Origin: Takakia lepidozioides | Lineage: Eukaryota > Plantae > Bryophyta | Length of the DNA stretch: 64,000 nt | Assembly: GCA_030704615.1 (NCBI GenBank) | Contig: CM060731.1 | Span: 56,544,001-56,608,000, forward strand | Direction of reading: 5' to 3' | Notes under the pieces: model-generated | What the model was told of the DNA's origin: nothing | The model's database searches: none | What the model saw: the letters and a program-made list of their open reading frames with translations, nothing else | Shown here: one piece after another, positions 14,125 to 37,400 of the stretch | How positions within the stretch are numbered: the stretch's first letter is position 1 | How the letters are laid out: the number at the start of each line of letters is the position of its first letter | Made by a program: the position numbers and the translations under genes

Positions 14125-14385
14125 TGGAGAAATGGTGCCAAATTTCTCTATTTTGGGCCGAATACGGGCCTAGTCCCAATATGTTCAGGAACGATGTCTG
14201 GAAAAATGGTGCCGAATTTCCAGTTACATGGCCCAAAACTGCCCAACATCTGTGCAATCCCCGACACCATCTACCGAAATTCGGCGCCACATTTCCAAAT
14301 TTTGGGGTACCACACTTGGCATGTTGGGACCTATAGCCGCGAAATTCCGCTCCATTTTTGCAGCTGTCGCTCGGAATTTCCATGA
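14125..14385. repeat. Subterminal-type repeats (AAATGGYGCCGAATTTCC in both orientations), left side of CACTA-like remnant
   Basis: Several direct and inverted copies; the same motif recurs at 18990-19425. Confidence 0.65.
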
Positions 14386-18989: not shown

Positions 18990-19425
18990 ACGGAAAATGG
19001 CGCCGAATTTCCAGGCTGGGTCCGAAAGTGGCTAAGTCCCAGAAAGGGCTGGGCCCCAACCTGGGAAAATGGCACCGAATTTCCAATATCGGTGCCAGCT
19101 ACCCCCGGGACTTGGCCATTTTCGGGGCCTGGAACTGGAAATTCGGCGCCATTTTTCCAGGCTGGGAAGTGGCTAAGTCCTAGAAAGGGCTGGGCCCCAA
19201 CCTGGAAAATGGCTCCGAATTTCCAGTATCGGTGCCAGCCACCCCCCGGGACTTGGCCATTTTCGGGGCCCGGAACTAGAAATTCGGCGCCATTTTTCCA
19301 AGCTGGGTCCGAAAGTGGCTAAGTCCTAGAAAGGGCTAGGCCCCAATCTGGAAAAATGGCGCCGAATTTCCAGTATCGGTGCCAGCCACCCCCCAAGACC
19401 TAGCCATTTTTGGGGCCCGGAATTT
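18990..19425. repeat. Tandem repeat, ~3 x 140-150 bp, each unit with an internal inverted pair (CACTA subterminal-like)
   Basis: Unit AAGTGGCTAAGTCCYAGAAAGGGCT...GGAAAATGGCRCCGAATTTCC...GAAATTCGGCGCCATTTTTCC repeated three times. Confidence 0.85.
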
Positions 19426-19769: not shown

Positions 19770-21005
19770 ATGAATAGAGAGATTGCAGCCACTAGGAAAA
19801 GGAGGGTAAGGGCCCTCATCAAATGCCTCTCAGTCTATCAAAGAAAAATGGAATCTCCCCGCTGTGATCAAGAAACTTACAATACCTACCTGGAAGCAAA
19901 ACAAAACTTGAAATTCTTCCAAGACCTGCAGGAGCAGAAGATCAGTTGTTCCTCCACTACATTCATGTGTATTGGTTCCAAAATCGCTATGTGGTGTACT
20001 GCTGCTTGCAACATTCCACATGCAAGCCAAGATACTAATGCAAGCATCGAGGCATACCACGGAAACTTAAAGGCGAGACTTAATATGGGCAAAGGCAAAA
20101 TGACGGGTCGAAGAGCCGACTGGCTCATATGGGAGTTGACTGGGCGTGTACTTATCGACTACTGGTATGGCATTCATCTGAAGACGCATGGATTTATTCG
20201 CAACGATAAACAAGAACAACACATTTCCAGTGCAATATGTGCAGCCCGTGACATACCTCTTTCACACGTGACTTTGCCTGCAACGCTTGGGCAGCCTGCT
20301 TACGTGATCAGCTCCTCTGATCCGAATACAACATACACCGTGTTCAATCCAGAGTCGCAGTGGGCCTGTTGCACTTGCCCATGGGCGCTGAAAGACAATC
20401 TGTGCAAGTACCAGGTTTGGGTCATAAAATTGCTAAAACCAGACGTACAAGATGGTCTCATTGTCCGGACATGTGGTACCCACCTCGGTACTGTTCACGG
20501 CGGGTTGGAGAATTTGGACGAACACGACGGCATGGCAGCATGTGACCTCAAAAGCACTAACGACAATGTGCGCGCAAGCGCAACCCCGAACACGGCGGAG
20601 TCATTGCTCACGCCAGACCTGTTGGAAGCTATTTTGAAACGAGAGATAACCGACCTACTCGACCTTGTACACAACGACGCATACCTTATACACCATTGCT
20701 TGTCTGCGATGCGTGTTTGCCAAGGGCAGATGCAGGACATCCTCGTCAAAAAAGCTTCCGACATGTTACACCCGACTGTAGCACGAGCGTTGAATCGTGG
20801 AAAAGACAACAACAACATGTCATTGAAGAGGAAAAATGGTTTTGTGGAACATTTTCAAGTTCGGCGGAAAATAAAACTAAATGGGGGGAAACGTGTGTCT
20901 GCCCTTCCCCATATTAGCCACATTTACTCGACTTTGAGGCGGGTGTCTCATCGTCCAGAACTGAGAAAAAAAGATCAATCTAACTATGGAAAGGATCTGC
21001 AGTAG
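19770..21005 (+). mobile_element. MULE-type transposase C-terminal half with SWIM finger
   Basis: From ~19965: WC...PHASQDTNASIEAYHGNLK (catalytic Glu region), GRRADWLIWEL, WACCTCPW...LCKYQ (SWIM-like). The first ~65 aa look unrelated (possible fused fragment). Confidence 0.75.
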
Positions 21006-21780
21006 ACCAAATGCGGCAGACCATGATCGCAAACCATCTGCAGTAGACCAATGATCGCAGATCACCTGCAGTAGACCAGTACTCACCTGCAGTAGACCAA
21101 TGCGGCAGACCAATGACCGCAGACCATCTGGGAGACCCATTATGTGCTTTTTAAAGGATTGATGAAGGAGACTAATGAAGTCAATAAATGAGCCAAAGTC
21201 AATCAGTAGACCAACGTAGTAGAGCAATGAAGCAAGCATAATTCAATGAAGCACTTAAAGGGGTAGACCAAGACAGTACAGTGGACTAATGATGCAATCG
21301 ACAGACCCATGGAATATTCGACAATCGATAGACCTGTGCCAAGTTTAGGCGACCACGGAATTCAGTAGACCACTGAGTCTACTAGACCACGAAAAGCAGT
21401 AGACCACTCTCTCATGGACAGACCTATGCCAAGCAGCAGACCCACATAGACCAGCAAGGAATTGACCAAGCAGTAGACCAAAATAAAAAATCGACTGATT
21501 GACCGATCGATATCAATCTGTGGTCCAAACCAAGTCCACTCCGCGGAGGGACCAGACCAATAACATTAGTTCACCAGCAGACCACGGCGAGCAGTACACC
21601 ATACATCACTAGACCAATAACATCAGTTCACCAGAAGACCACGTCGAGCACTACACCATACATAACATCGATCAGACCAGGAACGGAGTGTAAAGCAGTG
21701 GACCACGATAGCAGACTAATGAAATGTTCCACGAAAGTGTAGACCATACATAAAAATGAACAGACCTACACCACAAACCA
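20995..21780 (+). repeat. Cluster of CAGTAGACC/AGACC motifs between transposase and Ulp1-like gene
   Basis: About ten GTAGACC copies plus many CAGACC variants, essentially all on the plus strand. Confidence 0.85.
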
Positions 21781-21801
21781 GATGAGCAAATGCCATGTCT
21801 T

Positions 21802-22760
21802 TCATTTATTGCCAGGCCTAGAAGAAATAACCCGGACATTGGAAGAGTCTGACATGTCCAACATCTTCCTAGATGCCAACTGCCTCTCTACAACTACATT
21901 CTCCATAGTACTGAGTGCTTTCAAAATATACTCAACACACTTTAAGCGTTGCCTGCAAGCATAGCGGAATGTAAACCACTTTGAGGTAAACGGCTTTCCT
22001 CTCTCTCTAAGTCCTTTGCCACGATCGCCCTTCAACTAGTCGTAGAACCCCTCGATAAAGGACATGACGTAAAAGCCACATTCCCACGAAAAAGGTTGTT
22101 GTGGCACTTCAGGGACATGAAAATTGAATGCAGTGGCCTCGTCCCATGACGCCGTGTGTGGCTCCAAGCCGAGACATGCTCCATACACATTTCGAACCCA
22201 TGGCAATATCTCCACGGGTTTGTGCATCTCCTTGATTGAATTCAGATGAGTGAACACCGGCCACTTTTCTGACGTTAACCCGCGTCCACCTGTCACTGAC
22301 CCTATGGACTGTGCAACCCGCGTGGGCTGTGTTGGGCCGTGACAGGCTGTGTCAAACTGTGGTGAGCTGTGATAGTTGTTTGACTGTTTAGAACCAACAG
22401 ACTCGCCCGGTTATGAAGAATCCATTTGCAAATGGACTCTCGTGGCAACGCCGGAGTCCATCGTTTCAAGCCACAGCCTCCTTTGTTCATATGCTTTTAC
22501 TATTTTTGCTTTGTTGTTCGCCTATTCATGGGACTGTTTGAGCGCGGGGAAGACGTCCTTGTTTACATTGAGTTTACAGTGCAGACTTGAATGGAAGTAT
22601 TTAGCTCTTTGCTAACAAGTTGACTCATTTTAGCGGACAGCAATTGAGAATCAGCCTTTCCCTTATCACACTGTCTTGTTTGAGGCTTGTCCTCCATATA
22701 ACATGTCTGAGAATGGCATTACAAAAATGGCGGAAGCATATGTGCATGGCTGGCTGTATA
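21802..22760 (-). pseudogene. Ulp1/C48-like cysteine peptidase remnant (TE-borne)
   Basis: THLNSI...HVPEVPQQPFSWECGFYVMSFI resembles the C48 Asp-position and PQQxxxxxCG catalytic-Cys motifs; several stops; His motif not clearly seen. Confidence 0.6.
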
Positions 22761-23766
22761 AAATTCAGATTTCCTCCCGAGTTGCATCTCTTGGATGTTG
22801 GATCCCATCGATGCAGGACCAGATGGGCATGTGTGGCGGAATTTTTTGCGCACCGAACTAGTGGACCTTCCATATGTTACCATGATAGTGCGGGGATGGA
22901 CAGACCCAGCCGAGGGAACCATTGAAATGGTCAAACGGGTGGGGACACAATGCAGACAGAGGGCAGACCAGATGGGCAGAGCAGGAGAAGAGACGAGTGC
23001 ACCATGCCAGTCCAGACATGAAGACCAAACCAACAAACCAGCCTGGAGAACTCTGGGCAGACCCCGAAGGCAAGACCGAGGGTAGACAATCTTTGCCAGA
23101 CGAATGCGACAGACTAGTGCCACAAACCTGCACGGCAGACCCTTTTGACAGACCTGTTCGGCATACCGTACGGCAGACCCATATGGCTGACCTGACCGAC
23201 AGACCCGTTTGACAGACCCGACTGACAGACTCGACTGACAGACCCGATTGACAGACCCGATTGGCAGACCCGTCAGGCAGACTCTCGCAACAGACCAACG
23301 ACAAACCGGCATGGCGGAAGGACTTAGGGCAGACCATGGAAGACCTTGACGGCAGCCATTATTGTGCCGCCAGGACATTTGATGTTTCGGCAGCAGTCCA
23401 ATGGGCCACGGCCGCCTGTACGACGTGCATGGCCTCTTCTGCACGTGTGCATGGCCTCGACGGCCACACGCGTGCTCCTGTCACGCTTAGCAGTGAGCCG
23501 TTACGTTGGGGCCATCACCCTCTTGCGTCTTTCGCGTCTCTCCACTTTGCTCCTGCATGGTGTGTTACGCCGCTTCGACCCGACGATTCGTTTGTAGCGC
23601 CCGCCCGCTCTTGAAAGGTCACGTGCCCGTCGTTGCCGAAGTACGAAGGTATCAACTTCACCAGACTTCTGAACACCGTGAGACCTTCATTTCATTTTTT
23701 GCTTGCTCTTCTTCATTTGCATTCCGCAGACCATCCCTGACACAATTCTTTGCTTATGTTGTAGCC

Positions 23767-26375
23767 ATGGAAGAAGCTTGCCCAAAGGGTGGAGCCGATT
23801 GGGTGGAATATGTGCATGCCCCTCGCCACAAAGCAAAGAGAAGGTACTGGTATGAGCCAAGTGAGTACGATGCTAAAATAGTAGAAGCATTTTTGGACTT
23901 GCGCGTAGCGAAGGAGAAAGAGAACTGGCCAAAGGATCGGTTTCAGTGCCCCTTTTGCCCTGACATTGTCAAGGACAAAGAGACTCTAAACCGGCATGTC
24001 CTTAATGGAGGATGCAAAGGTATGGTCCCTGAGACCTTCAAGCCTTGGCCCAAGCCAAGTTCGTCTAAGGTTGCAAAAGAAATCACTGCAAAGTGTAGGG
24101 GTGCACATGTCATCGCTCGGTCTGCTAAGGAAGTGCGGCAGCGTTATTACACTGAAGCCGGCCTGCTGGGCCCCGGCCGCGTTGTGCCAATGAAGAAAAT
24201 GAAGCTCAGTGATGGAGCTAAAAAAAATGTAAACCGGAAAAGTCACAGACCTGCTAGTACTAGTACTGGCAGACCACGGGATATGAGAGTGACTAGCAAA
24301 GAATTGCAACCAGGTCGGTCCCATCAGACCAGCACCAGCAGACCACAGGCTGTTGTTCGAACTTTGTCATCCAGTGGGGATGACTCAAGTGAGGAAGACT
24401 CCCATGAAGAGGAGGATCATGTTCATGACATGTCGACGGAGCTGCCGCGACTAGTTGTGAGACCGTACTTGGTTTCCGACCCCATTGGGTACGCCCCGTC
24501 GGTACATGACATAAACCTAGACTCGGACCCACGAAGCAGACCACATATCAGACCCAACAAGCAGACCAAGAAACAGTAGACCCTGATTGACGTTCATGGA
24601 GATGTAACGGGCACCCCTGTCGGCCCTGGCACATTGTACCTTCTTCCCCATGGTCTTCTGTCAGACGAGTACCCAGATGAATCAGATCCGTTTTTCCCAT
24701 TTTTGTATGGTTACGTGAGATCAGGGCAGATACAGCAGACCATTCACACATTAGAGAAGAAGTGGGTGGATGCACGATCACACCCAAGGGATGAAGACTA
24801 CAACGGCCTCCAGGTACTTGAACCACTCTTTCTATGGTCTACCGTATTTAAGTGTTTTGATTTTCTGGTTGCAATGAGTGATATACTATGTTGGGTGTTG
24901 TATGTGTGGTCTACTGCTGTTGGTCTACTGTTCTGGGTCTGCTATTCTCTACATGGTACTGCATTACTTGTTCTGGCTGTGGTCTGCTGCATGGGTCCAT
25001 GGCCGTGCGTCTACTTTCCCCTGTTGCAAATCATGGTATACTGTTCTTTATTATTGTGGTCTGCTACAAACGGTCTACTATTTTGGGTCTGCTTTTCGCA
25101 ACATGGTATTGCATTGCTTTGAGAGGGTCCTACTATCCTGGCTGTGGTCTGCTGCATGGGTCCACGGTTGTGGTCTACTGTTATGCTCTACTGGTCTTCT
25201 GGGTGTGGTCTACTGATATGGCCTACTGGTCTATGGTCCACTGGTCTACTGTCATGGCCAATTTGGGGTGGTCTACTGGTCTATGGTCTATGGTCTACTG
25301 GTCTATTGTTATGGCCAATTTTGTTGTTTGTTTTCAGGAGGCGAATGCACAAGACAACCGAGTGTACAGGGCTTTGCAAATCTGGAAGTACAGGTCCAAC
25401 GGTCCTCCTTTGGAAAATACACTTGTCCGGAATGAGGTCCGTGATATTCGCGACTACATCCTGAGTCTGTATCCACAGTCGGCCGATGCCATTGCATCAA
25501 TTCAAGATGGTACCACTGGCCCCGCAGCAGGCCTCCCTCCGTCTGCGGCAAAGGCTTTTGAGAGCGTCGGTCAGACTAGCAGACCCAGCTCAGTGGACCT
25601 TTCTTCCGTGAACCGTCCTCCAGCGGACCTTTGTACCTCTGCAGCAGACCACATTGCGTGGCCGAATTGATTTCCCATTTGGCAGACCATGACGACCTCC
25701 ACAGTGACGAGGACCCCACTCTTCCGAAGTTTCGTTGTGGGGAAAGCAATCGGCATCTCGACTGGTACAATGAGCTTCACCGCATTGTCGCCTCCCTGTG
25801 GACCTTTGCTCTGCAGCACTCCTCAATGGAGTTCACGACGGAGGAGGCCACCCGTGTTTTGGACAAAGCCCGTGAGTATGGAGTGGCTCTTCTGGCAGAG
25901 GAGACCGAGCCACCGCTTATCGCGCAGCTCTTTCTCATGCACGACCCACGCCCACTAGAGATAAGGCACATGGCCATCGCCCACCCAATATTTGGTGTTC
26001 GTCCAAAGCACTTAGTGAGCTTGACAGAGAGTGTTTTTCAGGAGATAGCAGATTGTTTCTTCCGCCGTCAATGGATGCAATTCGGCAATTTCAGGTCTTA
26101 CATCAAATTAAAAAAAGACCTTCACAATCTGCGGATGGACCTGCTGTACGGAAGCAAAGAGGCTCGGGAAAGTATCACGCAAGACGCCATGATGTGGGTT
26201 GTGACTGTGCAAGAGCGTGCGGTGTTGGACATTGCATTTAACAAACGACATGCTTTCCAAGTGCTCTAGAGTGGGTTTCCAGCAGAGGACCGTGTTACAG
26301 CTCTGGGACAGCTTGATGAGGCCTTCATGGATTGGCTGATGAAAGATATTGGCACTAGAGGAAAAACGTGGAATA
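23767..26375 (+). pseudogene. TE-borne spliced gene encoding a C2HC/C2H2 zinc-finger protein with basic and acidic tracts, degenerate
   Basis: ATG 23767; FQCPFCPDIVKDKETLNRHVLNGGC; in-frame TAG at 24577; phase-0 intron 24814-25337 (CAG|GTAC...TTTTCAG|GAG); frameshift ~25650; TAG at 26267; cut off at ~26375. Confidence 0.6.
24814..25337 (-). repeat. Intron packed with TGGTCTACTG (reverse complement of CAGTAGACCA) motifs
   Basis: About nine GGTCTAC copies plus GGTCTGC/GGTCCA variants inside GT-AG boundaries. Confidence 0.8.
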
Positions 26376-27380
26376 ACCACTGGCCCTTTAGCCACTACTG
26401 TCTTTTTCCACTCTATAAACCACTAGTAACCACTTGCCAGTGGTTAAGCCACTGTGGCATCACAGACAGTGGTTGGAAGTGGTTTCAACCACTCAGTAGT
26501 CCACGTGTAATAATTTGTTTTTATTTATTATTATTTATTTGGTAATACATTTTAATTAATAAATATAATATTCCACGTGGACGAGTGCAGTGGTACATTG
26601 TGAGTGGTTATAGACACCTCAGTGATGGGAAGTGGTTGAAACCACTTGCTACTCCAAGTGTAATAATTCAAATTTTATTTGTGATTTATGATTTGGAAAT
26701 ATATTTTAATTCATAAATATAATATTCCACGTGGACGGGGACAGTGCACGTTGATCTTGAGTGGTTAAAGACACCTCATTGATTTGTACCACTTTGATAG
26801 TGGTGGAGAGTGGGTGGTGAAAGATACTACAGTAATTGGAACCACTATTCTAGTGGTTGCTCATGAGTGGTTACCTACACAACAGTGATTGGTACCACTT
26901 TTTGGGTGATACATGAAAAACTTTAAGTGGTTTGTGCAGCTGTGACAGACTTTGAAAAACAGACAAGTGGCCAGACCATTGTGGGATGATGCTATTGAAC
27001 AAATGGTTCCAACAATAAACTTTATTCTGAATCTGAAACATATTCGTCACCCTCTGAATCACTTTGCTCAACTGGAATAGCGGTTGGTTGCACAAATGCC
27101 GCTTGAATGGTAGCCAACATAGCCAGGTCTTCTTTATTTAGGTCCCTAATGACCTAGGTATTGGCAGATCTGATAAGGTAGACGTCGATTGGCACGCCAC
27201 TCATCACCACATGCCTCTATGTCTGTTGTGAACTGTGCCTTCTCTGTTAAAACCACTGTTTCAAACCACTGGAGGAATGAGCAGAATGACTTGTAAATGA
27301 ACATGCTCTTCCAACAAGTCACTCACTTAGACATTCCGTTACTACATCATTGGTTATAATCAGGATGAACCACTGACATT
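26370..27380. repeat. AACCACT/AGTGGTT motif cluster (likely subterminal region of the adjacent CACTA)
   Basis: More than a dozen copies in both orientations, plus a duplicated block ending TAAATATAATATTCCACGTGGACG (26560 and 26713). Confidence 0.6.
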
Positions 27381-27468
27381 TGTGACTTTGTGGGTGGTTT
27401 GATTACACTGGTGATAGTCAGAATTGAAATTGAACTTGATATGAATAAGGTGCAATGAAAAGAAATAC

Positions 27469-27790
27469 TCACTGCACCCAAGGAGCCATGACATTGGTAT
27501 TGTTCAGCACATACAAAATTTGTGCTGCATCTCTCCCAGCTCTAGTCATGTCCCGCTTTTTGCCGACACCTTCGAAGACCTCGTCCTCAACCCCTTCCTC
27601 CGCATTTGCATCCCAAATCCGCCGTTGAGTTGCATCAAATGATTGCATATACTCAGTCATGGAGCTCATGTCCTCATCCAGAACATACCCTGTAGTCGTA
27701 CTCCATTCTGGCTTTGTGTAATTCCTAACGTATCCCTAAGATCTTTCATGTAACGCTCCATGGGATACATCCACCGTGAAGACACTGGAT
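27469..27790 (-). mobile_element. CACTA transposase remnant (DUF4218), second family
   Basis: PVSSRWMYPMERYMKDL / YVRNYTKPEWSTTTGYVLDE...TEYMQSFDATQRRIWDA; frameshifted. Confidence 0.8.
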
Positions 27791-27894
27791 GAACAGTTTT
27801 GTTTATCTCCATGGAATACATCTATGTGCTCACTTGTAACCACTAAAATGAATTTTAAGAAAAAAATCAAAGTGCAAAAGATTTAAAAAAAAAC

Positions 27895-28106
27895 ACATCG
27901 GCTGGTAAGTGCAGAGTGTGTCATCCTGGTGGTTCAGGGTTCAAACCCGCTGCATTACCCCATGTGTGGGATTGTTTGTGACGACGGTATGTCTGGGCGT
28001 TGATCCTCCTGTAGGTCTCATGGCCCATAAATGAAAGGGGGTTAATTTTTCCCCCTCCTCAAGGGCCTGAGGTTTCCTTTAAAATTTATTTAAAAAAAAA
28101 AACAAA
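27895..28106 (+). mobile_element. tRNA-derived SINE-like element
   Basis: B-box GGTTCAAACCC at 27938, weak A-box upstream, A-rich tail at ~28092-28106. Confidence 0.4.
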
Positions 28107-28212
28107 AAGTTGCTTATAGGGTTTGTAAAAAGGTTAAAAAACTTTTAAAAATTGCCCATCACGTATGTCCAATATATACATACTTTCGGGGGGGAATTTC
28201 AAATGTGTGCAT

Positions 28213-28290
28213 GTAGCGTACTAGTAAGGGCTCTTCTTGCGTGTCGCGGGGTCGCGGGTTCAAACTCCTCGCGTTGTTTTTTTCCCCCTC
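28213..28290 (+). mobile_element. tRNA-like SINE head
   Basis: TAGCGTACTAGTAAG (A-box-like) ... GGTTCAAACTC (B-box); cloverleaf stems do not pair. Confidence 0.3.
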
Positions 28291-28986
28291 ATGCACTAAG
28301 CCCCACTAAGCCCAGCCCCACTAAGCCCTATCGTTGCTGTGCACACTAAGTCCTCGTGCAGGTTGGTCTTAGCAGGTCGCATTTCAATCTCTGCTCACTC
28401 AGCTGCACCGTGGCGGTTCTCATGGACAATCCGACATTACCTGACTACATACACAAGCAGCACACACAAGAGGTCCGTTTGGGTTCATGGTCTGTCACAT
28501 CCTCCATGGGTCATGACACAAGGTCGATGACAATGTGGTGAGGGCACCTTCTTCTTCGACCTATTTCAGCCTGTTTTGCCCTCTCATCAGACTCGGCCCT
28601 GAATTTGCAGCACGGAGCAGAGCTCGCATGAGTTTTTTACAGATCCTTCATGATGGTGGGACAATCGCAATCGCAAGGTGTGGCTTTTTCTTAATGTAGG
28701 ATGTGAAGAAGTTTGTCCATCCTGCAAATGTGGGCTTTTGGCTCCTGTTAGTACCATGATTTGGTATTCTTCCTAATGTTTACAAGGTTTTTGGGAGAGT
28801 CAGCTTGGTCTTAGCAGGTCGTGTTTCAATCTCTGCTCACTTAGCTGCACCATGGTGGTTCTCATGGACCAATGCGATGTTTTTTTTTTTTCCCTCAAGC
28901 ACTAAGCCCCACTAAGCCCTATCGCTGCTGCGCACTTAAGTCCTCGCTGATGTTTACAAGGTTCTTGGGATAGTCAGCTTGGTCCA

Positions 28987-31485
28987 GGGTATGCACGGCA
29001 GGGACGTGGGATGGAGGCTTTGGAGACCTATGAGCAAATGATGGGGGAAGCACATCGTGTTTGTGTGCATTTGCAATGCTGGTGCAAGCCTGGCAGCCCT
29101 GGAGAAGGGCTAGAGGTGCATGGGGATATCATCAAAGCTGGAATTGTGCCAAATGTCAATCTGAACACTGCCCTCGTAGCTTTGGAAAAGGGGAAAGAGG
29201 TACATGGCGTCATCTTCAGAGCTGGAATTGTATCAGATGTCATTCTGAACAATACCCTGGTGAACATGTTTGCAAAATGTGGGTGCATCTAGGATGCAAA
29301 GGGAGTGTTTGACACTATGGTTGAATGAGATGTGGTGTCGTGGAGTGTGATGTTTGCAGGGTATGCACGACAGGGACGTGGGATGGAGGCTTTGGAGAGC
29401 TATGAGCAGATGATGGGGGAAGAACATCATGTTTGTGTGCATTTGCAATGTGCGTACAAGCCTGGCAGCCCTGGAGAAGGGCAAGACATGCAATGGGATA
29501 TTACCAAAGCTGGAATTGTGCCAAATGTCAATCTGAACACTGCCCTAGCAGCTTTGGAAATGGGGAAAGAGGTGCATGGCGACATCTTCAGAGCTGGAAT
29601 TGTACCAGATGACATTCTGAACAATACCCTGGTGGACATGTTTGCAAAATGTGGGTGCATCTAGGATGCAAAGGGAGTGTTTGACACTATGGCTGAACGA
29701 CATGTGGTGTCATGGAGTGCGATATGATGTGCTTGCAGGGTATGCACAGCAGGGATGTGGAATGGAGGCTTTGGAGAGCTATGAGCAAATGATGGGGGAA
29801 GCACATCATGTTTGTGTGCATTTGCAATGCTTGTGCAAGCCTGGCAGCCGGCCTGGAGAGGGGCAAAGAGGTGCATGGGGATTTCATCAAAGCTGGAATT
29901 GTACCAAATGTGAATCTGAACACTACCCTGGCAGCTCTAGAAAAGGGGAAAGAGGTCCATGGCGACATCTTCAGAGCTGGAATTGTACCAAATGTCAGTC
30001 TGAACCATACCCTGGGGGACATGTATGCGAAATGTGGGTGCATCGAGCCTGGACGAGAGGTGCATGGGGTATCATCAAAGCTGGAATTGTACCAAATGTC
30101 ATTATGAACACTACCCTGGCAGCTCTGGGAAAAGGGGAAAGAGGTCCATGGCGACATCTTCAGAGCTGGAATTGTACCAAATGTCAGTCTGAACCATACC
30201 CTGGTGGACATGTATGCAAAATGTGGGTGCATCGAGCCTGGACGAGGGCAAAGAGGTGCATGGGGTATCATCAAAGCTGGAATTGTACCAAATGTCGTTA
30301 TGAACACTGCCCTGGCAGCCCTGGAAAAAGGGGAAAGAGGTCCATGGCGACATCTTCAGAGCTGGAATTGTAAACCATACCCTGGTGGACATTTATGCAA
30401 AATGTGGGTGCATCGAGCCTGGACAAGGGCAAAGCGGTGCATGGGGTATCATCAAAGCTGGAATTGTACCAAATGTCATTATGAACACTGCCGTGGCAGC
30501 TTTGGAAAAAAGGGAAAGAGGTCCATGGCGACATCTTCAGAGCTGGAATTGTACCAAATGTCATTCTGAACCATACCCTGGTGGACATGTTTGCAAAATG
30601 TGGGTGCAAAGGGATCTAGGATCTAGGATGCAAAGGGAGTGTTCGACACTATGGCTGAACGAGATGTGGTGTCGTGGAGTGCGATGCTTGCAAGGTATGC
30701 ACGGCAAGGACGTGGGATGGAGGCTTTGGAGACCTATGAGCAAAGGATGGGGGAAGCACATCATGTTTGTGTGCATTTGCAATTCTTGTGCAAGCCTGGC
30801 AGCCCTGGAGAAGGGCAAGAGGTGCATGGGGATATCATCAAAGCTGGAATTGTGCCAAATGTCAATCTGAACACTGCCCTAGCAATTTTGGAAAAGGGGA
30901 AAGAGGTCCATGGCGACATCTTCAGAGTTGGAATTGTACCAGATGTCATTCTGAACAATACCCTGGTGAACATGTTTGCAAAATGTGGGTGCATCTAGGA
31001 TGCAAAGGGAGTGTTCGACACTATGGCTGAACGAGATGTGGTGTCGTGGAGTGCGATGCTTGCATGGTATGCACGGCAGGGACGTGGGATGGAGGCTTTG
31101 GAGAGCTATGAGCAAATGATGGGGGAAGCACATCATGTTTGTGTGCATTTGCAATGCTTGTGCAAGCCTGGCAGCCGGCATGGAGAAGGGCAAGAGGTGC
31201 ATGGGGATATCATCAAAGTTGGAATTGTGCCAAATGTCAATCTGAACACTGCCCTGGCAGCTTAGGGGAAAGAGGTCCATGGCGACATCTTCAGAGTTGG
31301 ATTGTACCAAAATAAAACCTTGGTGAACATGTTTGCAAAATGTGGGTGCATCTAGGATGCAAAGGGAGTGTTCGACACTATGGCTGAATGAGATGTGGTG
31401 TCGTGGAGTGCGATGCTTGCATGGTATGCACGGCAGGGACGTGGGAAGGAGGCTTTGGAGAGCTATGAGCAAATGATGGGGGAAG
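28987..31485 (+). repeat. Tandem array derived from a pseudogenised PLS-PPR triplet (~372-bp units with ~190-bp internal subunits)
   Basis: Units start at ~28987, 29359, 29738, 30693, 31065, 31422; encode YARQGRGMEALE, KEVHGDIIKAGIVPNV, LVNMFAKCGCI*, MAERDVVSWSAM with shared frameshifts and TAG. Confidence 0.9.
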
Positions 31486-31499
31486 GGGGGGCACCTTCT

Positions 31500-34437
31500 T
31501 CAATAGCACAACGGCTACGAGTGGGCTGTGGACCACAGTCCTAGATCATGGTATGTCATCAGACCTTTAACAGACCTTGTCGGTGACCATGAACGCATAC
31601 CTTCTCGCAGACTTTATCCCAGACCATGTGAACCATGACAACCAACAGACCTTGTGAAGCAGACCACGTGAACCAGCAAACCCCCATGTATTCTTCCATT
31701 TGTGAGCAGACCAGGGATGAGTGCTTTGTTTCTGACAATGTTTCTGACATTGTTGCAGAGTACGACCCGGAGGACGAGCTTGTTTGGAATGCTCTGGACC
31801 AATACGCCAATGGCGCATGACAGCTTCTAAGAGCCCTCCGTGGCCATACTAGCGTCGAGTCACCCATTAAATGCAGGCTCATTGGAGTTCATACAACAGT
31901 AGACCCTTCATTTACACAGAACCCAACTCCTATGGAGACCCAGCAGGACCGCAGCGAGCAGACCGTGGAGCGAGCAGACCCTTCCCAGCAAAATCCCAAG
32001 TACCGACATGCAAACCAGCAGACCTTGTCGATGGAGAACAAGGAACAACAGACCCCCAACTGGATTATCAGTACTCCCCAACCAGACAATGTGGTGGGAC
32101 ACCCAAAGTCCGAGGCCTTTTTTCTCGAATCGTTGGCCAGACTTCGTGAGACTTGTTTGGGTGACAAAAACTTACTGACTTTTTCCAACTTGTCCTTGCC
32201 AAAACAGACTTTCGTGGAGGCATTGCACACCTTACCCGAAATTACTGGGGAGACCTTGGTTATGCATGCTTTTCCAGATAACACCTTCCAGAACACCTTC
32301 TATGAGCAGACCTTTCCAGATCAGCGGGCACCCATCTTACATCAGATGCAGACCTTCCCACCGTCCACCTTCCTAGAGCAAACCGCTACGGTGGACAGCA
32401 GACCAGAGCATACTAGAGCAAACCAGACCACACCACACCACACCACACCAGAGGAGTCCCCACTAGACCAGACCAGACCAGAGCGAATGACTCCAGACGA
32501 GACGAGTGCACAAGAGACTAGACCCTAGAAGACCAGAGGATACCAGACCACACGACACCACACTAGACCGTATCAGAGTAGACCTTTCCCGACCAGTGCA
32601 GACCTGATCAGACCTTGCCGGAGGACACCCTGCCCGGTACATTGCTTGACAACAGCACCGCATAAGTGCATCGCGACACAGGTATGGATGCTAACACCTC
32701 CAACATCAGCAGACCCTGCCAGTGCAGGACATCAGATCATCTGACATTCGTGAAGACCTGGCGGAAAAAACCCAGGAAGCGACGCCGATCCTCCCTGGCA
32801 CTTACAAGTTGCCGAAAATGAGAGGATCAATTCCTTTCCCCCCCACTGCACCATCTGCTGAGAAGCAGAGAATGGTAGTGGACCTTACCCTTGTCACCAA
32901 ACCTTCTGACACAGCACGACCTGAACAGTACTGAGAAGGCGCCAGTGCTCATTTATCCATAGTACAGACCAATTCTCCAATTGTAACTATGGACTATGAC
33001 AGTGACACTTTGGACTGTGACCTTCCCCATCTGTTAGAGGCAAGGTCTACAGAAGATGAGGATGTATCTTTGGCCGTTTTGCCACTTAGTTGTGTGGACC
33101 CCGACTCGTCTGTAGACCCACAAGTGGCGTTAGACCAATCCGTTGATAGGGTGCTCTTTATGTTCGACTCCACCACTGAGAAGGTAGACCCCACAGCAGA
33201 CCTTTCAGCAGACCTTTTGGAAACCCATGCACATATTTTTGTCCATTCTCATTCTCTGGATCCAGTCACTGTAGTCAAAGATGTACCTGCCACAGGAGTG
33301 GTGCAATTGCAGACACCCACAGCGCCCACAAAGGTCTGATTCCATTGCATTTTTACAATCCAATTTTTTTTTCGGGTGCATTTGGGTGGTCATTGCTAAG
33401 GTTTTGTGGTCTGATCTTCATGTGAAGGTTCTGGCGTTTGAGGTCTCAGCTCATGGTCCGTTGCAGGTGCTCAACATGGGGTCAAGCACAAAGGGTGGAC
33501 CAGTAGTGATAACCCCCACTGTAGGGGCCAGTTCGACCCATGGAGTGCAAGAAGCGTCTAGAACGGGACCACAGAGTGTCAATAAACCCCAGGACAAAAT
33601 CTTGTTGTGAAGCCGAGCTAGCCAGCTCCGGGAGGGTATGAAGGAGACGGCTGTTGCATTGGAAAAGAAGTTGGATGAACCTGCTTCAGCAAATAGAGCG
33701 ACGGTAGCTGGGAAGAAGCGCATACCATGGCGTGGCAGACCCGAGGCAAAAAACAATTCCCCCCAAAAAAGGCGCTCCATGGGTCTGCTCCTGATGTGGT
33801 TGCCGTTCATCCGCTCCATTGCCCTACTCCATTGGTCTGTTCGTTGGGTCTGGTACCGTATCCGTTGTAGGTCTGGTCTTTCTGGGTGTGGTCTCATTCT
33901 CTCGGAGCCATACCATTGGCCATCGACGCCCAACTGGATCTATCAATTGCATTGGTGTAGTCTTTGGTGGCATAATGTTTTTTTTCCAAATTGGATTTAA
34001 GACCTCTGAACAACAACAACAACAACAGGCGATAGGCAACAGAGAAAAGAGAAAAGAGCAAATGGGGTCTGAGGAGATCAGCAAGTGCCATGGCATGCCC
34101 TAAATTTGGACGGTCTGGATAAAACCGGATCTGGATGGGCAGATGCGCGCCACGTAGGTCTGGGTCTGTTGTGCCGGTCTGGGGTGGTCTGCCGGACGAC
34201 ATGCGCCACTAGCGGGCAAACCCCAGCCTTGGGCGGACCTAGCGGCGACCGCGGGTGGCTGTGGGCCTGCCGACCGCGCTGCACGGCTAGTAGATGGGGG
34301 TGGGCGGGGGAGGCCGACCCCGCGTCGGTGCGCGCCCTGTCCCACACGCGACATAAACTCCCAATTATTCAAAAATGAGAGGCATTTATAAGTATGTGGA
34401 GTAATTTTCTGGAAGGTTTCTTCATTATAAATTTCCG
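31500..34437. mobile_element. AGACC-rich TE segment with a MULE-like terminus, probably the distal part of the element starting ~19.9 kb
   Basis: Same AGACC motif (plus strand to ~33340, mostly GGTCT afterwards); low-complexity QT/RP-rich ORFs; GC-rich then AT-rich end ...ATTATAAATTTCCG; matching left TIR and TSD not found. Confidence 0.45.
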
Positions 34438-37400
34438 GATTTCAGTAAAAAAGTGTATAGTGGCCCATTCATCCCCTTATTCACGGTGGTTGAATACAAG
34501 CAAACAAAGTCTTATGTATTGTACAAGTAGTGGACCCCCTCTGCCTCTAATTCCCCACACTGTCACAGTTTCCAAGAATCACTACGGTATGTACCGAAGG
34601 CTCTACACCTCGTCGACTATGACAATTGTTCTTGCTGGCTGTGTGACAATCTATACCTCAGGAGTGGCATCCCAGTGGTCAGTACTAAGCCATGGCGTGT
34701 TGTGGCAAAGAGGACTTCCCTCATGATGCTCTCCCACAACACAGAACTAGTGGGACTAGAATCTATTGAAAACCGAGTACCTACTCTCCAAGATCAGATC
34801 GCCCACTTGGATATTTGATGGCTTGGATCATTTTCAGGATAATTCTGGAGCCCATGCTAAATAAAAAGGAAGTCGTGATTCTCACAATGCTGGTGCTGCA
34901 TGAACTTCTTGCAACCTACCTCATGAGTTCAGATGTTTGAAAGGAGCCATGAATCTGCTCGTTGACACATCATGCTCATTGGTAGTCAGTGCGTTGCAAA
35001 ATAGATTCGATCAATGCTGCAACTACAAATTTTGAAGTACAAGCTGATTTTCCACATAGTATGTGCATCCGTTCATTGCCTACCAGCGCGATTACATTTC
35101 AAGATCTCAAGTCACTGGCAAACACTCAACACCTTCGAAAGAAGCTGTTCAAAATTGCTAGGAGCTCGGAAATTTCCAGACTGGTGGAGCTTGCCTCAGC
35201 TAGATTCCTACTAAGGGTTTGACAAAGGAGTTTACAAGCTTCCAACTTTTAAGAGTAGGGGAGGAGAAAGACAAATCAGAATTAACCCAACAGAGCAGAA
35301 TTGCCTCTCTGGCACGCTTGGTTACACGAATTCTAGAGGTATTAATAGTGCGGGAACTGGGGGCCGATTAAGCGAGCATTCAGAATAAACACCACTCGAA
35401 TACCTTGCCCAAATTGTGCACACTCAAATTAGGTGCGTCACGATGGATCACTGGTCCTACATAGCGGACTACGTATTGCTAGTTGTAATGGAGACAAAGT
35501 CGGTTTTTAGTGAAGCTTGACATGCGTCGTGAATTCAGGCTCCTACATAACTGCATGTGGCTGGACCGAGTGGGCCGGTAGTCTATCCTCTAGATAGTTA
35601 TTAGTGAGTGCAATGTTCACACTTCACGCCCTCTGCACTGCCCACAGTACTTCGAGGGGACTGTTTACGTTGTTATCGTACTTCCAAAGAATATGACAAG
35701 TTCATGTGGAAGCATGCCATCATATGATCCGGCTGTCGATATCCACTGAATGTCATTTACTATTTGCTGGTTGGAGGAGTCCAAACCGAAAAAGGTGGAG
35801 AATCATGTCGACGAGACTGATGAGCGCATGACAACCATCGCTGGCTGCTACAAAATCGATCGAGAAATAGAAGAAACGAACACTGAAACGACAAACTGAG
35901 AGGAAAGTGGCCGTGCGCCCGGCGTAGCCGGAAAGGCGCCGCCATTACAGTAGGCTTGGTGTGACTTGTTGAGCAAATTGCGCCCATTCCCCAGAAAGAT
36001 CGTTCCTTTGTACTTAGAGCTTTCTGACAGAGGTATATTTCCTTCCTTAAGTGCAACCCAACGTGCTAAACGAGTTCTTATAGACTGCAAGACCCTCATG
36101 GAGCCTTACCGTTAGCTTAGGGTTTGACTGATGATGAGCTACAAATCACATTAGGAGACTTGATGACAAGATACACTGCACTGCACAGCAACCAAGCAGC
36201 CACTAAAACTCGGGGCGTTTACTGGATGATCTACAAAGACAAACGCTTCCATATTGGACAACCTGGTTAGCTCTATTTCTGATTATACAATAACCAGTGA
36301 CAACCTTTGCCGCCATAGCTGCTTTGATGATCTGTTTGAATCCAGCTCTGAACTCTGAACCGCCCATAATAATATAAATCTCCCTCCAGAGGCGGAACTA
36401 ACAATCTAATAACGAACTCTTGGACTGCAAGAAATCTTTTGTCGCTACTGCAACCAACGAAATGGACCTGGGTACTTGCGAAGCAGTAAAGGCCTGCACT
36501 GCCCTTACACCCAATATTAGCTGCACGTGCCCCCAAACACCTGCGAGTGACGGAACCGTGACATTCGGCGCTCTGTTGACCCTCAAAACGAGCCCAGGAC
36601 CTGTGACCGATAGGCTATGAGCTCTCGGATGGAATGGGCAGGTTGCTCTTTACGGATTCCATATGTACATTGAGAATCAGAGCAGCGTCACTCATCAGCG
36701 TGGTACTACATGTAACTCCAGTGCATGTGTGGTGACCGTTGCGAGGAGTGTCTCCCATTGATTTCTAGCTTGTCGCATCATGGTTTTGTTGAGACTGTAG
36801 ACTACAAGCAGCACTAGTACCAGTCTCCAGATCACTCGATGGTTGTGGACAACTTCCAACCGTCTTCCTCAGAATACGCACACTCAACAAACGTATCTTC
36901 CAAAGATATCATGTTCACTCAACACTCTTCCTTGCTGCACATGAATTTGCACCGAGAGACTAGATCCAAAGTAATTGCAGTTGTAATGTCAAACTTGAGG
37001 GTAAGGTGTGAGGGTTATCTGTCTGGGAGGCGGGTTAATTGCGTCCTCACTCATTTTATTTTAACATTTTTCAAAAAAGGATCTCCGGGAGCGGCTGCCA
37101 AGTTGCTCCTGGCGGCGCACTCGGTTAATAAAATGTGTAGGGTCCATAGCCTAGAAACAATCTTCATCTTCTCCAAAGTCCGCGTGTGCAGCTTGAGGAC
37201 TCAGTCTTGGCCGTCAGTACTTCCTCAGCGGTTTGAGGTAAGTGCACAACGTGCGTATGACGCTTGTCATTGGAATTGTATCCATCTGCATGGACTCAGT
37301 CCCGTATCAAGTACTATATATGCAGATTGACAATGACTCGATAGTCGAACAAAATGCCTGATACCTTCACATTCATTCGCTGGAAATAAATGCGACGGCA

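Follow-up and report, generated by a model that had tools for sequence, protein, structure and literature searches.

Does a Mutator-like element (MULE) in a moss carry, within its own noncoding DNA, the target sites of a regulatory protein that it encodes itself? The question is raised by a 64-kb stretch of Takakia lepidozioides contig CM060731.1 (GCA_030704615.1; positions 56,544,001 to 56,608,000), here called the window, in which all coordinates below are counted from the first letter. The window holds what, judged from its sequence, is a decayed Mutator-superfamily copy, truncated at both ends and belonging to a high-copy family. It contains the remnants of a transposase gene and of a Ulp1-like peptidase gene together with a spliced third gene (gene 3), and its noncoding parts are packed with the short motif AGACC. 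We observe directly the anatomy of this copy, the enrichment and orientation of the motif, the homologues of gene 3, and the change of motif between their lineages. A tentative answer is that the arrays and a putative zinc-finger protein encoded by gene 3 may form a functional analogue of the VANDAL/VANC system of Arabidopsis.

AGACC arrays in the element

The nine-mer CAGTAGACC occurs 18 times in the window, compared with 0.32 copies expected from dinucleotide-preserving shuffles, and 16 of the 18 copies lie either at 21.0 to 21.5 kb on the plus strand or at 24.57 to 25.30 kb, mostly on the minus strand. The recurring core, AGACC, is shorter than the nine-mer. Of its copies, 134 are on the plus strand and 75 on the minus strand, nearly all of them confined to 21 to 25.4 kb and 31.5 to 34.4 kb. 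In an unbiased k-mer screen of the motif blocks against the rest of the window, AGACC is the top 5-mer (19-fold), and the top 6-mers are CAGACC (52-fold), AGACCA (28-fold), and TAGACC (28-fold). The extended word is YAGACC, often within CAG-Y-AGACC. Position frequencies give the consensus C-A-G-(T/C)-AGACC-A at 21.0 to 21.8 kb and 24.8 to 25.3 kb and the consensus G-R-C-AGACC-C/T at 22.9 to 23.35 kb and 31.5 to 32.7 kb.

The copies form five arrays, three of which are placed between or within the genes. Array A (21003 to 21790) sits in the spacer where the transposase and Ulp1-like genes converge with their 3' ends and has 26 copies on the plus strand and none on the minus strand (33.0/kb), mostly of the form CAG-T/C-AGACC-A. 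Array B (22900 to 23350) lies where the Ulp1-like gene and gene 3 diverge, between their 5' ends, and has 16 plus-strand copies and no minus-strand copies (35.5/kb), mostly G-R-CAGACC-C with a 13/26-bp periodicity. Array D, which fills the gene-3 intron (24814 to 25337), has the opposite orientation to array B, with none on the plus strand and 19 on the minus strand (36.3/kb). The two distal arrays are less dense: array F (31486 to 32720) has 28 plus-strand copies, mostly CAGACC, and no minus-strand copies (22.7/kb), and array H (33341 to 34440) has 2 on the plus strand and 14 on the minus strand (14.5/kb). Poisson probabilities for the enrichment of the arrays range from 1e-12 to 1e-27.

The initial annotation had described the noncoding parts as packed with the motif and the motif as sparse elsewhere, and densities calculated for each part bear this out: 33 to 36/kb in the proximal arrays and 14 to 23/kb in the distal ones, compared with 1.3/kb in the rest of the window, outside the element. 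The transposase exon (2.4/kb) and the Ulp1 region (0/kb) are at the background level, and the exons of gene 3, whose variable coding tracts also carry YAGACC arrays, though less so, reach 6 to 12/kb. Spacing between AGACC copies is irregular (5 to 295 bp), and plain tandem repeats, with periods of 13, 14, 26 to 28, and 57 bp, make up only parts of the blocks.

The first base of the extended word is not evenly distributed: TAGACC prevails in array A and the gene-3 intron, and CAGACC prevails in arrays B, F, and H. Deamination of a methylated cytosine in the CHG context would be expected to turn CAG into TAG, which is also the change that made the stop codon at 24577 in gene 3. An alternative is that there are two functional motif types, comparable to the VANC21 motifs termed C-type and T-type.

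The third gene and its homologues

Gene 3 lies on the plus strand, divergent from the Ulp1-like gene. Exon 1 (23767 to 24813) is supported by its similarity to the predicted proteins P0004 (E value, 4.7e-42) and P0009 (E value, 3.7e-4; alignment A1). It encodes a conserved N terminus, one putative C2HC/C2H2-like zinc finger (23941 to 24015), basic tracts resembling a nuclear localization signal (NLS), acidic tracts, and a PGTLxLLPHGL segment. The intron has GT...AG borders and phase 0. Exon 2 begins at 25338 and extends to approximately 26362, as defined by tblastx with the homologous contig L002 (alignments A2 and A3; 52 to 54% identity), and encodes a variable region rich in Q, T, P, and S followed by a conserved helical C-terminal domain. 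Motif copies within the exons occupy two codon phases, coding RP and QT, which indicates that it is the DNA word that recurs and not a single peptide.

Three lesions mark this copy of gene 3. An in-frame TAG at 24577 to 24579 was created by a copy of CAGTAGACC at a place where other motif copies read CAGCAGACC, the frame changes between 25502 and 25709, and a second TAG lies at 26267 to 26269. At the last of these, all 12 other genomic contigs have TGG (26268 A>G), as does L002. Together with the partial transposase and a stop codon in the Ulp1 remnant, these lesions agree with the decayed state that had been ascribed to the copy.

An exhaustive HMMER search found only two true relatives of gene 3, P0004 and P0009. 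L002, which encodes P0004 and P0010, is colinear with both window exons at 48 to 54% amino acid identity, is uninterrupted, and has a phase-0 intron (L002 positions 1171 to 1503) at the same place as the window intron. The spliced third gene proposed from the window alone is thus confirmed by an intact colinear homologue, and on this comparison gene 3 is a real, conserved gene of unassigned family. Word-based protein searches with the window C-terminal open reading frame (ORF) found no relative, and those with the L002 C-terminal domain returned the query alone; the ESM Atlas gave no usable match for the C-terminal part and only generic zinc-finger leads with low recognition for P0004; and two JGI metagenome scans found none. 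Since the searches returned so few relatives, the family is hardly represented in public protein sets.

The three aligned gene-3 proteins have in common the N-terminal segment, the finger, the basic NLS-like tract, and the PGxLxLLPHGL segment. The finger ligands follow the pattern C-x2-C-x12-H-x5-C, and C61, C64, H77, and C83 are kept in all three homologues. In a profile search of the PDB, the finger weakly resembles the DNA-binding C2H2 fingers of ZFP57, CTCF, and ZBTB10 (E values, 0.01 to 0.07), and in an AlphaFold2 model a beta-beta-alpha element appears at residues 59 to 80 with a local pLDDT of approximately 65. If the helix is numbered as in classical fingers, positions -1 (D) and 6 (R) would be invariant and positions 2 and 3 would vary among the three homologues. 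A single C2H2 finger with flanking basic residues, as in GAGA factor, can specify a core of about 5 bp. The core of 5 to 6 bp found here would fit such a module, the likeness being one of analogy, with no sequence or structural match established.

The main new result is that the motif changes between gene-3 lineages. L002 and a second contig, L003, were both obtained from run SRR15431198, a shotgun metagenome of washed T. lepidozioides plants described in PMC9021317. The intron of L002 is packed with AGTCCGCTG/AGTCTGCTG, which is CAGCGGACT/CAGCAGACT on the minus strand; it holds seven CAGCGGACT/CAGCAGACT copies, antisense as are those in the window intron, and exon 2 holds sense copies (17 matches versus 1.3 expected). 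L003 carries a distant gene-3 homologue (25 to 30% identity) and has ten TGTAACCC-type sites directly 3' of the conserved end of exon 1 and five more upstream in the opposite orientation, for a total of 15 versus 0.85 expected. In the window and likewise in L003, the array upstream and that in the intron run in opposite orientations. The window shows no enrichment of TGTMACCC, which places its element in the AGACC subfamily alone. Motif similarity is greater for the closer homologue, with AGACC in the window and AGACT/GGACT in L002, while the TGTAACCC motif of L003 is unrelated. As three gene-3 lineages have three motifs at the same position, the array in this intron is a conserved feature, and its motif differs by gene lineage.

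A separate observation concerns exon 2 of L002. At positions 1700 to 1900 of that contig, sense copies of CAGCAGACT encode the IQQTP/VQQP peptide repeats of the variable region, so that the target-like DNA motif and the repeat region of the protein are one sequence.

Contigs from two runs guessed to be RNA contain an 84-nucleotide match (82%) to positions 25340 to 25423, starting at approximately the acceptor site of gene-3 exon 2. These contigs are 1.6 to 2.1 kb long, and both of their flanks are unlike the window; they may come from a diverged gene-3 paralogue that is transcribed or from a domesticated relative of the gene. One further contig, also from a run guessed to be RNA, covers 339 nucleotides at 95% over the 3' region of the Ulp1-like gene. 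These few pieces are not enough for a claim that the family is transcribed.

The transposase, the Ulp1 remnant, and the extent of the element

The ORF at 19770 to 21005 on the plus strand is the remnant of the last exon of a MULE/SWIM transposase gene. It matches the C-terminal part of MULE/SWIM transposases on Logan contigs (P0001 to P0003; E values, 1e-34 to 6e-26), the three relatives being all that a word-based search found. The copy starts near TNASIEAYH, the third motif of the catalytic region, which begins at 20034. A SWIM-like CxC...CKY begins at 20367, with a tyrosine in place of the SWIM histidine; P0001 and P0002 read CKH where the window reads CKY. A further homologous contig, L001, aligns to 19980 to 20489 at 42% (tblastx), and there the matching portion forms the final exon of at least three, those upstream bearing DATF and TDN motifs and passing the Pfam model for MULE (PF10551). 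Likewise, P0003 passes the Pfam model for SWIM (PF04434). The window ORF itself has no Pfam match, and tblastx against L001 detected no upstream MULE exon in the window. The initial annotation of a SWIM-MULE transposase on the plus strand is therefore upheld by homology, for a last exon that has lost the SWIM histidine. L001 has no motif array and no Ulp1 gene within 1.5 kb 3' of its transposase, which is uninformative for the window family. Directly upstream of the transposase exon is an unrelated 141-bp tandem repeat (19008 to 19422; 2.9 copies, 89% identity) that contains inverted repeats and has a partner of 86% complementarity 4.9 kb farther upstream (14198 to 14246).

The Ulp1/C48 peptidase remnant (22036 to 22611, minus strand) is convergent to the transposase and broken. 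It has a Q...ECGFY catalytic-Cys motif near its C terminus, preceded by H and D motifs with an in-frame stop at the H-W position, and it scores 20.3 bits against PF02902, just under the cut-off of 20.7. The best PDB match, which includes the catalytic-Cys motif, is SENP7 (weak; E value, 0.8), and the nearest ESM Atlas clusters are plant C48 peptidases (score, 0.88). This evidence for a Ulp1 identity is weak but consistent, so that the convergent protease called in the initial annotation survives as a probable fragment. Within the remnant, summed contig depth at 22109 to 22482 is 10 to 50 times as high as elsewhere in the element and reaches more than 100 contigs at 22338, and a short GCTGTG-type repeat is present. 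Many contigs are common to approximately 22258 to 22375 and diverge beyond it. This stretch is either a far more abundant repeat or a piece common to many MULE subfamilies.

Contigs from DNA runs of the source organism cover 30 of 30 bins of the region from 20.8 to 26.4 kb, with 2,236 pieces at ≥80% identity, and the run labeled "plant metagenome" covers 29 of 30 bins. From the complete coverage and the number of pieces, it follows that the family is abundant and has copies less decayed than the one in the window. Joints that skip or repeat 39 to 255 bp among genomic copies are clustered in arrays A and D, which indicates gain and loss of repeat units between copies.

Homology of gene 3 stops at approximately 26362 to 26395, where an unrelated repeat begins, and DNA with background levels of AGACC (26395 to 31485) parts the two motif-rich segments. 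The initial annotation had joined these as one element on the strength of the motif, and the distal segment (31.5 to 34.4 kb) may indeed be an interrupted continuation or may be a separate fragment. We consider the chances evenly balanced that 19.8 to 26.4 kb and 31.5 to 34.4 kb are two fragments or copies of one family, 5 kb apart, one of them being, for example, a nonautonomous derivative. The segments are alike in motif only: the distal one has no homology to the proximal part, to L001, to L002, or to a putative exon 3 of L002, and no Pfam match. Between them lie 5.1 kb of unrelated repeats, including a DUF4218 fragment, SINE-like pieces, and a satellite derived from pentatricopeptide repeat (PPR) sequence, and no pair of terminal inverted repeats (TIRs) was found in the window. 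Nested insertions into a single element would look alike, however, and the abrupt end of gene-3 homology at 26.36 to 26.40 kb, exactly where foreign repeats start, fits an interruption. The distal array F overlaps a Q/T/P-rich ORF (31932 to 32528); array H ends in a GC-rich stretch (34100 to 34340) and has no inverted-repeat partner within the window.

The DNA between the segments is itself composite. Positions 26395 to 27000 are saturated with AACCACT/AGTGGTT in both orientations, with a 154-bp tandem repeat at 26467 to 26783, and an ORF on the minus strand (27469 to 27821) contains WMYPMERYMK and weakly matches DUF4218 (E value, 7.7e-4). The AACCACT-rich stretch probably represents subterminal DNA of a CACTA-type element by which gene 3 is truncated. 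Positions 27900 to 28330 and 28790 to 28930 contain the tRNA-like pieces GGTTCAAACCCGC and GGTTCAAACTCCTCGCG, after which come CACTAAGCCC repeats, as well as a GGTCTTAGCAGGTCG...CTCATGGAC block that is duplicated; they resemble SINE-like insertions that flank the beginning of the PPR satellite. This satellite (28985 to 31485) has a 372-bp period with subperiods of 84 and 181 bp and consists of approximately 6.7 units at 83 to 90% identity.

Candidate binders and known systems

In the explanation that we favor, the family would encode three proteins, namely, a transposase of the SWIM type, a peptidase resembling Ulp1, and the conserved gene-3 product, and the YAGACC arrays would be lineage-specific cis-sites for a sequence-specific DNA-binding protein encoded by the element. 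The arrays are read as cis-sites because diverged gene-3 homologues bear a different motif at the same intron position. The zinc-finger protein of gene 3 would be the leading candidate binder, and active copies would thus recognize and regulate only their own family, by trans-activation or anti-silencing. We put the probability that the arrays and this candidate binder are a functional analogue of VANDAL/VANC, and not a homologue of it, at about 0.42; we infer that the sites are bound, which protein binds them, and what the epigenetic consequence is.

The likeness to VANDAL/VANC is one of organization. VANDAL21 and VANDAL6, which carry VANC (PMC5735166, PMC10398659), and the window element are alike Mutator-superfamily elements with three genes. 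VANC targets are motifs that are dense, of one orientation, and noncoding, that turn over as tandem repeats, and that differ between related lineages, and the VANC protein combines conserved domains (DUF1985/DUF287) with a variable region of peptide repeats (PMC5735166). The element described here similarly has short family-specific motifs, dense and in a single orientation, in spacers and introns; its arrays are partly tandem and vary between copies, the motif differs by lineage, and gene 3 likewise joins conserved domains to a variable region in which peptide repeats occur in tandem. Unlike VANC, gene 3 has a single C2HC/C2H2-like finger and an unrelated C-terminal domain, with neither DUF1985 nor DUF287. 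The hosts are also different (a bryophyte here and Brassicaceae for VANDAL), as is the motif, which has a core of 5 to 6 bp (YAGACC) compared with 9 bp for VANC21. The proposal that gene 3 may be a functional analogue of VANC is partly supported, by the three genes, the oriented arrays, the lineage-dependent motifs, and the variation in array length among genomic copies. A VANC homologue was also considered as the identity of gene 3 and was ruled out by the missing domains.

A group of non-TIR MULEs offers a partial parallel. Kaonashi/KI-MULEs (PMC13317346), which are non-TIR MULEs of angiosperms, have a Ulp1/C48-like gene beside a transposase and a third gene, as the window copy probably does, and no long TIR was detected in the window element. 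Unlike the Kaonashi Ulp1, the Ulp1 of the window is a broken remnant just under the Pfam cut-off. Capture of Ulp1 by non-TIR MULEs has been placed near the monocot-eudicot split (PMC13317346). A moss element with Ulp1 would therefore imply a separate capture or one of much greater age.

The main rival to gene 3 as binder is the transposase, an equally legitimate candidate. Its N-terminal DNA-binding domain would bind the arrays, for transposition or self-activation, and gene 3 would be a chromatin or transposition cofactor or similar. The AtMu1c transposase alone binds the ends of its family, with family-specific hypomethylation and activation as the result, and TnpA-type regulators, such as that of En/Spm, derive from transposases (10.64898/2026.08.24.746577). 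Those systems resemble the one proposed here in that an element protein recognizes the repeated motifs of its own family and has an activating or hypomethylating effect. They differ in that the binder is the transposase or a derivative of it and the sites are terminal or subterminal. In the window, the arrays A, B, and D are internal, between and within genes and not at recognizable termini, and the gene-3 candidate is a zinc-finger protein without similarity to transposases. Arrays accompany gene 3 on L002 and L003, contigs that are too short to show linkage to a transposase. The window lacks the N-terminal part of the transposase, which leaves room for this rival; overall we regard it as rather unlikely. 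It is quite unlikely that the arrays arose neutrally, through replication slippage or unequal exchange in rapidly evolving noncoding DNA of the transposon, and are recognized by no protein: parts of them are plain tandem repeats with the periods given above, genomic copies differ by repeat-unit indels, and the same low-complexity DNA spills into coding tracts, but slippage is made less likely by the one invariant core of five blocks that differ in flanks, periods, and orientations and have irregular spacing, and by the retention of an array with other motifs at the same intron position in independent lineages, and the adjacent transposase and Ulp1 exons and other spacers are without arrays.

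Several points weigh against gene 3 as the binder in a VANC-like system. The role as binder and the anti-silencing effect are drawn by analogy, and since the window does not include the N-terminal, DNA-binding part of the transposase, this protein remains a candidate, as the AtMu1c transposase, which hypomethylates its own family unaided, illustrates (10.64898/2026.08.24.746577). The finger, although conserved in its ligands and supported by PDB profiles, matches Pfam zinc-finger models (zf-C2H2_4 and zf-Di19) only below their cut-offs, so that the zinc finger of the initial annotation is retained as a putative one. The AlphaFold2 models, built from three-row alignments, are unusable (pLDDT, 43.5 for the product of the N-terminal exon and 35.9 for the domain at the C terminus). 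Pfam scans with E values up to 1 found no DUF1985 or DUF287 in the window gene 3, P0004, P0009, or P0010, and the comparison with VANC that had been suggested thus turned out negative at the level of domains. The change of motif is seen in three lineages, two of which are short metagenome contigs, and the L003 array is placed 3' of exon 1 with the acceptor site not established. The window copy is dead, and the three genes are known side by side from this copy alone. Neither a TIR pair bracketing the element nor a target site duplication or element end was found in the 64-kb window, the lack of a TIR pair in a copy truncated at both ends being no guide to the family.

A more specific version of the VANC-like reading is that sequence-specific self-recognition or anti-silencing arose by convergence in the MULEs of a moss lineage that diverged early, with a single-zinc-finger protein that co-diversifies with its motif (YAGACC, AGACT/GGACT, or GTAACCC) in subfamilies that are mutually blind. 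We hold this version to be doubtful. Gene 3 is not a VANC homologue, and if the function holds, it is a case of convergence. To our knowledge, transposon-encoded sequence-specific anti-silencing has been shown by experiment only in Arabidopsis (for VANC and, more recently, for the AtMu1c transposase and for TnpA), and a literature search found no such system described in bryophytes or in Takakia. The presence of a Ulp1-like gene in a moss MULE bears on the timing of Ulp1 acquisition by MULEs. If the VANC-like function of gene 3 is true, the coevolution of a protein and its target array would become directly testable, and a small zinc-finger module with naturally diversified specificities could serve targeted epigenome editing. 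A second, nonhomologous system in a bryophyte would also mean that, across land plants, DNA transposons repeatedly rely on pairing a private motif with a binder of their own.

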